A DNA stretch of 63,328 nucleotides, the filler included, from Reticulomyxa filosa (taxonomy: Eukaryota; Protista; Foraminifera): NCBI GenBank assembly GCA_000512085.1. It is 23 parts of 23 records of this genome, joined end to end, with 100 filler letters (N's around TTAATTAATTAA, not from the genome) between each part and the next. Parts side by side here need not be neighbours in the genome. Positions count along the whole stretch, not along the records: positions 24,714 to 26,153 come from ASPP01001423.1; 22 more parts are not named here. One strand, given 5' to 3'. Position numbers and translations under genes: made by a program. Of the stretch, positions 24,714 to 26,153 are shown piece after piece (the stretch's first letter is position 1; every line of letters begins with the position of its first letter). The notes below the pieces were generated by a model. That model was given only the letters and a program-made list of their open reading frames with translations, did no database searches and was not told the origin of the DNA.

Positions 24714-26153
24714 AATTTCATTAACATTATATTTCCATGAATTGATATCAAATATAATTTTTTGTGCTGCACAATATTCTTGACAAGATTTATGTACAAA
24801 TTGATATTTATTATCACCAATGCATATTTTGAGATGATATCGTCGTTGAAATACTTTTCCCAATATTTTGCATTTTTATAATGGTGTATTGATTTCATTT
24901 GTTTTTTTTACATTTTCTCAATCATATTTTGGTTTTTGTCATTATCTCTCAATGTTGTCCTTTTTTCATCCATCTTCATGTCTGCTTTTTCATTTGCACT
25001 TTTAATCTCTATTTTTATTTTTGGATCCAATTTGTCCAAGATTTTATCGTTGCCAAATTTTATATCATTATTTTCTGTTGCAACTTGATTTCCTTGGTCC
25101 TACAATGCTTCTTCTAAATGACGACAAAATAGACTTTTACCTGATCCTGATTTTCCTTGTAATATTATCACTTATTGTTCATTTTTTTTCTCTTCTTTTT
25201 CTTCTTTTAATAAATCAATTATATATTGGTGACAATCATGTGCATCATTTTTTTTTATTATCATCATCGACAGTACATGGATAATTGTTTGCATGTAATG
25301 AAATATATGTTTCGAGTGCTTGCAACATTGTTGTATCTTCTTCCAATTATTGTTTTCTTAATTCTTTTAATAATGATATAACATCAGCACAATTTGCAGT
25401 GTTCATTTCACCCATAATATATTTCTTAAAATACTCAAATAAAATAACATAAATAGCTTGCCCTTTCATTTTTGTTGGATTGAATTTACAAAGTTAATTA
25501 TCTATAAACTTAGTTAATTTTAATGAGATATCATTTTTGACATTGATTTTACAAATTATATCATCGATCTTTGTTAATGTTTTATCACTTGCTTGTTTTA
25601 ATTCTTCTCCCATTTGATTATTAGGTTTCCATGCTCGAATATGTTCATAACAGTATATCCTTCTAATATTGTGAAATTTTTTAACGTTACTTGCATTTCA
25701 ATATATACATCATGTTTTGGAACATACAATTTAATATTATGAAATCGATGATGTGTCTTTGATTGTGTGAAATCCTTATCTTCAGATACAATCAAATTGA
25801 ATTGCTATGCTTTCTTCATCACTGCAAGTGCTGTTTGTAGTTTAGTAGGGTTATCACATAAAATTGTAAATTATCCAATATCAAATTATTGATTAAAATC
25901 ACACCATAATCTGCTTGAGTCTTTTACAATAGTCTTTCATTCCTTTCAAACTAGATGGCTTCACAACGGTAATTTCATATTTTTGTAATTCTGTTACCAA
26001 ATTGCATGTTCACAAATCTTCAATATTCTTTGCATATTGTCTAATTTTATTTGCTTTCAATTCATAAGAAAATCCAGATTTGATTGAATATGAACATTGA
26101 TAATTGTCATTCACATGTATTGAATCACCACTTGCACAAATAAAATGTTCAGC
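24714..26153 (-). pseudogene. NLR-like pseudogene: RelA/SpoT-like nucleotidyltransferase followed by a NACHT NTPase (internally deleted)
   Basis: Translation across lesions gives LKGM/ERLL*KTQADYG/DFNQ*FDIG*FTILCD...HHRFHNIKLY...VYIEMQVT.../YEHIR. Next is Walker A VIILQGKSGSGKSLFCRHL (about 25133-25156), then the NACHT winged-helix motif YQFVHKSCQEYCAA (about 24765-24806). Confidence 0.78.

Follow-up and report, generated by a model that had tools for sequence, protein, structure and literature searches.

A dead gene copy in the foraminiferan Reticulomyxa filosa points to a large family of putative RSH-NACHT-WD40 receptors with a Tas1-like enzyme domain

Can a short and broken stretch of foraminiferan DNA be what is left of a receptor that carried a nucleotide-signalling enzyme? 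This question is raised by positions 24714-26153 of the window, the whole stretch of 63,328 nucleotides (nt) that was analysed, which is made of joined parts of the Reticulomyxa filosa assembly GCA_000512085.1 (Foraminifera, Rhizaria). The piece has a G+C content of 26.5%, and it contains no long open reading frame (ORF). A sequence-only reading had taken it for a dead copy of an NLR-like gene of a rhizarian, in which a nucleotidyltransferase of the RelA/SpoT homologue (RSH) type is fused to a NACHT domain. The host is indeed a rhizarian, and, judged from its sequence, the piece is a dead and heavily degraded paralogue (a pseudogene) of an R. filosa RSH-NACHT-WD40 family. Very probably this is a family of NLR-like STAND proteins, the intact members of which would act as RSH-NACHT-WD40 receptors.

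All RSH and NACHT motifs that had been read across stops and frameshifts were found in the order proposed. They lie on the minus strand of the piece in three frames, with TAA, TAG and TGA codons and changes of frame between them:

About 25903-25946, minus strand: K..R...K block.
25853-25885, minus strand: FDIG*FTILCD, the second synthetase motif; the Mg-binding Asp is kept (family D110, P0002 D203) and the codon for the conserved Arg has become TAA.
25727-25753, minus strand: HHRFHNIKL, the end of the conserved acceptor-side loop and the next strand (family T154-H155-H-R157-F-H159).
25685-25702, minus strand: IEMQVT, the E-x-Q motif; the catalytic Glu is kept (family E173, P0002 E266).
25635-25649, minus strand: YEHIR.
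25133-25156, minus strand: GKSGSGKS, Walker A (G-x-x-G-x-G-K-S/T), also present in the family.
24765-24806, minus strand: YQFVHKSCQEYCAA, the winged-helix signature that follows NACHT domains; the family consensus is Y.FLHKSCQEYFAA.

The winged-helix pattern F-x-H-x-S-x-Q-E-[FY]-x-A-A is thus seen both in the piece and in the family. Each stop-free piece was searched by itself, and no search was given a translation spliced together across the stops or frameshifts. Pfam gave only generic P-loop matches on these pieces (AAA families among them), with NACHT at 19.2 bits against a cut-off of 26.7, and did not find RelA_SpoT there. Because of this, the stop-free pieces alone are insufficient proof of the RSH-NACHT reading.

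At the level of sequence, the homology of the piece to the R. filosa family is far above chance. The intact paralogue P0002 aligns to it with a chained E value of 9e-105 (tblastn), and a fragment of 68 amino acids (aa) encoded at 25601-25804 on the minus strand gave 25 matches among 1.84 billion representative proteins (phmmer; best E 1.1e-21, 91% identity), some of them 1,000-1,700 aa long. The expectation that intact paralogues could be recovered from the source proteome was borne out, as long open members are present. More than 120 R. filosa gene models have the same N-terminal domain; 61 are long models, all from R. filosa, 61 are short, 58 of these being R. filosa fragments, and there are mid-length models besides. 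The number of loci may be of the order of a hundred, which is uncertain because the assembly is fragmented. In public databases these R. filosa proteins are named only as "hypothetical", "NACHT domain-containing", "NB-ARC domain-containing" or "WD-40 repeat" proteins. The novelty is therefore in the reading, the sequences themselves being already in public databases.

In the intact members the modules follow each other in one ORF: a short leader, a beta-rich domain with four cysteines (Cys4), the RSH domain, a helical linker, the NACHT domain with the winged-helix motif FLHKSCQEYFAA, pentapeptide repeats, and WD40 repeats forming one or two propellers. Of the full-length paralogues whose DNA was available, P0027 (RFI_21712) is the closest to the window copy. 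From the RSH domain to its end, WD40 array included, its frame runs for 1,665 codons without a stop; that of P0002 does so for 1,244 codons from its start. The tripartite effector-NOD-repeat layout is present in both. As RSH, NACHT and WD40 occur together in single uninterrupted genomic ORFs, the fusion does not depend on splicing. Pfam finds a weak RelA_SpoT match upstream of NACHT in intact members, NACHT above the cut-off in P0003 (43.0 bits), P0010 (31.5) and P0004 (30.2), pentapeptide repeats in P0004, and 9-14 WD40 repeats in P0002 and P0009, so that the C-terminal WD40 sensor for which a check had been advised is there. Highly similar WD40 repeats, as occur in fungi, were looked for and not seen in P0027 (TRF: 1.9 copies, 77%). 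The beta-rich domain (P0002 aa ~35-135) has four invariant cysteines, C46, C51, C81 and C84, in the pattern C-x4-C...C-x2-C, and its beta strands are modelled with a pLDDT of 84-94 (model A1 residues 1-48, model A2 residues 35-135). It probably binds zinc. That it regulates the enzyme, like the pseudo-zinc-finger of CapRel, is only a thought that comes from this analogy.

The N-terminal domain of the intact paralogues was predicted to have a Pol-beta/RelA-SpoT fold, and structural modelling confirms an RSH-type alpha/beta nucleotidyltransferase. The AF2 model of P0002:94-346, built from an alignment of 57 domains (A1), has a mean pLDDT of 89.3 and a pTM of 0.82. The best 50 Foldseek matches in the PDB are all RSH synthetases, the first being Tas1 (6ox6_A, E 6.2e-8, TMt 0.63). 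With VIA (48,161 chains) the Z scores are 13.1 for SAS2 and for Rel, 12.0 for Tas1, 11.8 for RelP and for SAS1, 11.3 for CapRel and 9.7-10.2 for RelA/SpoT. After ten RSH enzymes there is a clear drop to generic Pol-beta nucleotidyltransferases (Z at most 8.3). A second model (A2, P0002 1-500) gives the same structural matches.

Sequence comparison points in the same direction. Pfam RelA_SpoT (PF04607) is matched at E <=0.01 by 54 of the 57 domains in the same region (best E 1.3e-6). The only solved structure matched by the A1 profile is Tas1 (E 7e-4), with which the family has the block K.K..ER...KI..DY.GD....D..R.TI in common, and the canonical RSH, SAS and Rel structures are not matched by this profile. 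NCBIfam gave nothing relevant for five domains. The catalytic Asp and Glu are conserved, as the sequence-only reading required: D110 (in FDIGRF) and E173 (in YIEMQATL) are invariant in all 57 domains, and so are T177 and H155. Almost as well conserved are K88, K96 and Q175 (56/57 each) and R92 (53/57), and R113 is found in at least 53 of the 57. D110 aligns with the Asp of RelA FDVRAVRIV and with Tas1 D306. The reference for the donor site is FaRel2, with a triphosphate-binding ladder, an Mg-binding Asp and an E-x-Q motif (PMC11782079), and family D110, E173, K88, R92, K96, R113 and Q175 correspond to its donor-site residues (PMC11782079). The ladder (R-x-K-x3-S-x3-K) is represented by K88, by R92 in place of Ser and by K96; its first position, 86, is variable, with Lys in 28/57. 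Instead of D-x-x-G-x-R the family has D-x-G-R-x-T, and the same Arg and Thr are found in Tas1 (KDLARNT). On these motifs, the enzyme domain appears to be Tas1-like, its second synthetase motif being the variant D-x-x-R-x-T. Between six intact domains compared in pairs, pN is 0.04-0.18, pS 0.50-0.75 (near-saturated) and dN/dS 0.03-0.13. The enzyme domain is old, and it is kept by strong purifying selection in the intact copies.

The window copy itself has followed another course. Its lesions were mapped against P0027, and the comparisons with P0001 and P0002 agree with this picture. The 5' block and the P0027 gene share 85.3% identity across 1,058 nt (blastn). Both ends of the copy are cut by the edge of the piece, and the WD40/repeat end falls beyond it. 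The remnants are as follows:

24714-26153, minus strand: whole piece, a pseudogene, equivalent to P0027 aa ~185-990 minus aa 601-852 (tblastn and blastn maps).
26013-26153, minus strand: remnant of the C-terminal part of the beta-rich domain, equivalent to P0002 aa 100-146; ends in TGA.
25551-26012, minus strand: remnant of the RSH (Tas1-like) pyrophosphokinase, its fold and family assigned from the intact paralogues.
25172-25550, minus strand: remnant of the helical linker that joins the enzyme domain to NACHT; this linker is visible in model A2.
25103-25171, minus strand: NACHT Walker A stub, VIILQGKSGSGKSLF..., ending in TAG (W600 of P0027); NACHT 19.2 bits.
25097-25098, minus strand: junction of a ~750-nt deletion; P0027 aa 601-852 are gone.
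24876-25096, minus strand: decayed variable region past the NACHT core (QGNQVATENN...), with many frameshifts and stops at 24966-8 and 24876-8.

At least 10 nonsense codons were counted, with about 20 indels that shift the frame and 3 deletions of larger size; the copy is dead, as had been supposed. Eight nonsense codons lie in the 5' block: four in the RSH remnant (25924-6, 25886-8, 25871-3 and 25805-7), three in the linker remnant (25494-6, 25347-9 and 25172-4) and one at 25100-2. The two in the 3' block are those of the variable region. All are of the substitution type, and all three kinds of stop occur. The 5' block has nine frameshifting indels, including deletions of 11, 22, 31 and about 105 nt, and the 3' block has about ten. 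The RSH remnant shows frameshifting deletions at about 26014 (-11), 26004 (-22), 25944 (-1), 25903 (-1) and 25651 (-31). The linker remnant has lost the 105 nt at ~25547-25552 (split 86 + 19 in the alignment) and has a +1 frameshift at 25256. At the largest deletion, blastn jumps from nt 1535 to 2269 of the P0002 gene and from nt 1937 to 2689 of the P0027 gene, and the intact genes have no intron at this site. With it went Walker B (FVFILDGFDE), the sensor region marked by VTCRS, and the NACHT module's helical part. The Walker B pattern (hhhhDG[FL]DE), the sensor region and an above-cut-off NACHT score are found in the intact paralogues and are absent from the window copy. Because the ~250 codons in between are deleted, no NACHT domain is left in the piece, only the Walker A stub and the winged-helix motif. 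The proposed fusion of RSH to NACHT therefore holds for the intact paralogues, and the window copy no longer shows it, having lost its NACHT core.

It could still be asked whether the locus is a working gene that only seems broken, through mistakes in sequencing or assembly, through introns or through a non-standard genetic code. The assembly is fragmented and some of the lesions are 1-nt indels in A/T runs, which would speak for this. Ten substitution-type nonsense codons of all three kinds, together with deletions of 11 to ~750 nt, make this explanation hardly credible. The paralogues of the same assembly are open for 1,244-1,665 codons without a stop, so the code is the standard one and neither introns nor sequencing error explain the breaks. 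Wrecks such as the window copy would be the expected result of birth-and-death turnover of receptor families. A second decayed family copy is present on the contig of RFI_16856 (L009:599-2329, the P0022 locus; contig G+C 24.8%), in several frames and with a degraded NACHT core retained. We considered whether these two are sister pseudogenes with a common lesion, which is unsupported: they are just 73-75% identical, below the identity of the window copy to the intact P0027, and because of this L009 is regarded as an independent pseudogene. Such a second wreck is consistent with birth-and-death turnover.

How would the intact proteins work? By analogy with NLR/STAND receptors and with the RSH toxins of bacteria, binding of a ligand at the WD40 end would drive oligomerisation through NACHT, which would activate the N-terminal enzyme. 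With ATP as the donor, the enzyme would then pyrophosphorylate an adenine nucleotide at its 3'-OH, resulting in (p)ppApp and a drain of ATP, as with Tas1. Less likely, it would modify the CCA end of tRNA, as CapRel does. In either case, an immune or allorecognition response would close down the part of the syncytium that is affected. The (p)ppApp outcome is favoured because of the sequence link to Tas1, the structural scores not separating the two. A bolder reading, less likely than not, is that the intact members are ligand-gated (p)ppApp synthetases with an origin in a toxin lineage, independent of the fungal RelA_SpoT NLRs.

Several points weigh against the main reading of the family. The RelA_SpoT scores do not exceed the gathering cut-off of 27, with exactly 27.0 bits for the environmental relative P0007 and 17-24 bits for the others, and when A1 is compared by hhalign with the synthetase region of E. 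coli RelA alone, the right block aligns but E is weak (0.13). The family has D-I-G-R-F-T and E-M-Q-A-T-L for the canonical D-x-x-G-x-R and E-x-Q-x-R-T, so its chemistry could differ from that of known RSH enzymes. Tas1 is the only PDB match of the profile and the top Foldseek match, but its VIA Z is tied with those of SAS2 and Rel, and VIA Z separates Tas1 neither from (p)ppGpp synthetases nor from the tRNA-modifying CapRel. An immune role is suggested by analogy only.

With the same receptor logic, the domain might instead pyrophosphorylate the tRNA 3' CCA end and stop translation, as CapRel, FaRel2 and PhRel2 do. CapRel reaches a Z of 11.3-11.7 with 180-196 residues aligned, which is no more than about 2 below the top matches, it is itself a fused sensor-toxin in immunity (PMC11782079), and the acceptor-side loop of the family (K.SKTHHRFHN.K) is rich in conserved basic and His residues. 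The profile, on the other hand, finds only Tas1, a (p)ppApp synthetase that is also the top Foldseek match, and the D-x-x-R-x-T variant is common to the family and Tas1, which leaves tRNA as a possible but doubtful target. Another option is that the family serves (p)ppGpp-type stress or nutrient signalling and is not an immune or cell-death receptor at all. SAS1, SAS2, RelP and Rel are structurally as close as Tas1 (Z 11.8-13.1), and the Pfam RelA_SpoT model was built mainly on (p)ppGpp synthetases. We consider this unlikely, as housekeeping does not need more than 100 NACHT-WD40 paralogues and many pseudogenes, a pattern typical of birth-and-death receptor families, and canonical RSH enzymes were not found by sequence.

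More improbable still is a catalytically inactive domain, the fold of which is kept as an oligomerisation or adaptor module. The replaced canonical G-x-R and Q-x-R-T residues and the sub-threshold Pfam scores would agree with it. However, little or no variation is seen at the Mg-binding Asp, the catalytic Glu and the lysines for the ATP phosphates in spite of saturated synonymous sites, and Tas1, which is active, has the same D-x-x-R-x-T variant.

The family can be set beside several known systems. RelA_SpoT-NACHT-WD40 proteins were listed among fungal NLRs, for example in Gaeumannomyces graminis (Dyrka et al. 2014, PMC4986451), where RelA_SpoT makes up <1% of the annotated N-terminal domains (PMC4986451). 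The fungal precedent mentioned in the sequence-only reading is therefore real (PMC4986451), and because of this listing the RSH-NACHT-WD40 kind as such was already known. Like the R. filosa proteins, these fungal NLRs have enzyme, NACHT and WD40 in the same order, are multi-copy, would act as direct-effector receptors and are known from sequence alone. Unlike them, the R. filosa family belongs to Rhizaria, counts more than 100 models, and has a Cys4 beta-domain in front and pentapeptide repeats before the WD40 repeats. New here are the supergroup, the unusually large expansion, the Tas1-like motif variant and the extra Cys4 domain. In a literature search, no paper was found that links Reticulomyxa or Foraminifera with NACHT, NLR or RSH genes.

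Among bacterial proteins, Tas1 (Apk1; PDB 6OX6), the (p)ppApp synthetase and type VI effector of Pseudomonas aeruginosa, has a structural Z of 12.0-12.8 to the R. filosa domain at only 17-19% identity. Tas1 is a secreted toxin that is neutralised by an immunity protein, whereas the R. filosa domain is part of a eukaryotic STAND receptor, and terms for Reticulomyxa or eukaryotes are absent from published lists of 2,959 Tas1 homologues. CapRel(SJ46) (PDB 7ZTB), a fused toxin-antitoxin RSH with the toxSYNTH fold, senses a phage capsid protein and pyrophosphorylates tRNA. Its fused sensor keeps the enzyme inactive until the invader is recognised (PMC11782079), which is the logic that we propose for the R. 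filosa family, but CapRel is a small single-chain bacterial protein with pseudo-zinc-finger regulation and a tRNA target, and has neither NACHT nor WD40. The synthetase domains of RelQ/SAS1, RelP/SAS2 and Rel/RelA/SpoT have the same fold (Z 9.7-13.8) and equivalents of the Mg-binding Asp, the Glu of E-x-Q and the phosphate-binding Lys. The small alarmone synthetases and Rel make (p)ppGpp for the stringent response and are not receptor effectors, and the R. filosa family lacks their canonical G-x-R and Q-x-R-T. In bacterial antiphage STAND/NACHT proteins (Avs, bNACHT) the switch couples a C-terminal sensor to an N-terminal toxic enzyme, with sensors and effectors that differ from those of the R. 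filosa family.

Among the known toxins and antiphage effectors of bacteria are RSH enzymes, which either synthesise (p)ppApp or pyrophosphorylate tRNA. To our knowledge, RelA_SpoT domains on eukaryotic NLR-like proteins have been listed for fungi only and have never been studied. More than 100 models, conserved catalytic residues and purifying selection suggest that eukaryotic STAND receptors really use an RSH effector, and the R. filosa family widens the set of bacterial immune and toxin modules that are reused in eukaryotes. The intact R. filosa genes are natural material for the chemistry, and the window locus is of use in that it leads to the family and gives evidence for birth-and-death turnover. 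If the (p)ppApp reading is true, about a hundred NLR-like receptors in a free-living foraminiferan would drain ATP by means of a Tas1-type toxin domain. Such a use of an alarmone-type nucleotide in eukaryotic immunity or cell death would be a first. Its source would be a bacterial lineage of interbacterial or antiphage toxins, and the fungal RelA_SpoT NLRs would have a separate origin.

Outside R. filosa, relatives of the domain are scarce. A bacterial relative of the family was not found by sequence search, phage genomes gave no significant tblastn match to the domain, and A1 pattern scans of metagenome, viral and prokaryotic genome contigs yielded no confirmed relatives. A feature-based search of the ESM Atlas reached scores of 0.84-0.86, a lead only. 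The fold neighbours in the ESM Atlas are of the RelA_SpoT type and fall in bacterial, phage and giant-virus (Nucleocytoviricota) clusters and in two clusters made up mostly of diatoms, where the alignment takes in the beta subdomain as well (model residues 4-228). Sequence search detects none of the giant-virus and diatom neighbours. The few environmental relatives are P0007 (JGI), P0021 and P0112 (ENA) and P0020 (JGI and Logan). P0007 (L004:316-1403, JGI 3300030741) comes from 31%-GC DNA and is 57-58% identical. The idea that it is a stand-alone enzyme was rejected: what is annotated as its stop reflects a frameshift, after which the next frame carries on with family sequence (KPHSIVGILKPP) as far as the contig reaches. 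The P0020 contig, found in two samples (L010:768-2505 (+) and L011; 43% GC), encodes the Cys-rich domain, RSH, linker and Walker A and is 36% identical to P0027. The coding sequence stays in one frame, free of frameshifts, and is interrupted just twice, each time by TAG. Either the gene has suffered light damage or its host organism reads TAG as sense. Upstream of this homologue lies an ORF for a bacterial-type RecA C-terminal region. Within R. filosa, P0026 (RFI_08856; L005:814-3897) has two tandem RSH domains (aa 80-331 and 462-713) ahead of one NACHT, which is either a true internal duplication or a fusion of two neighbours by the gene caller.

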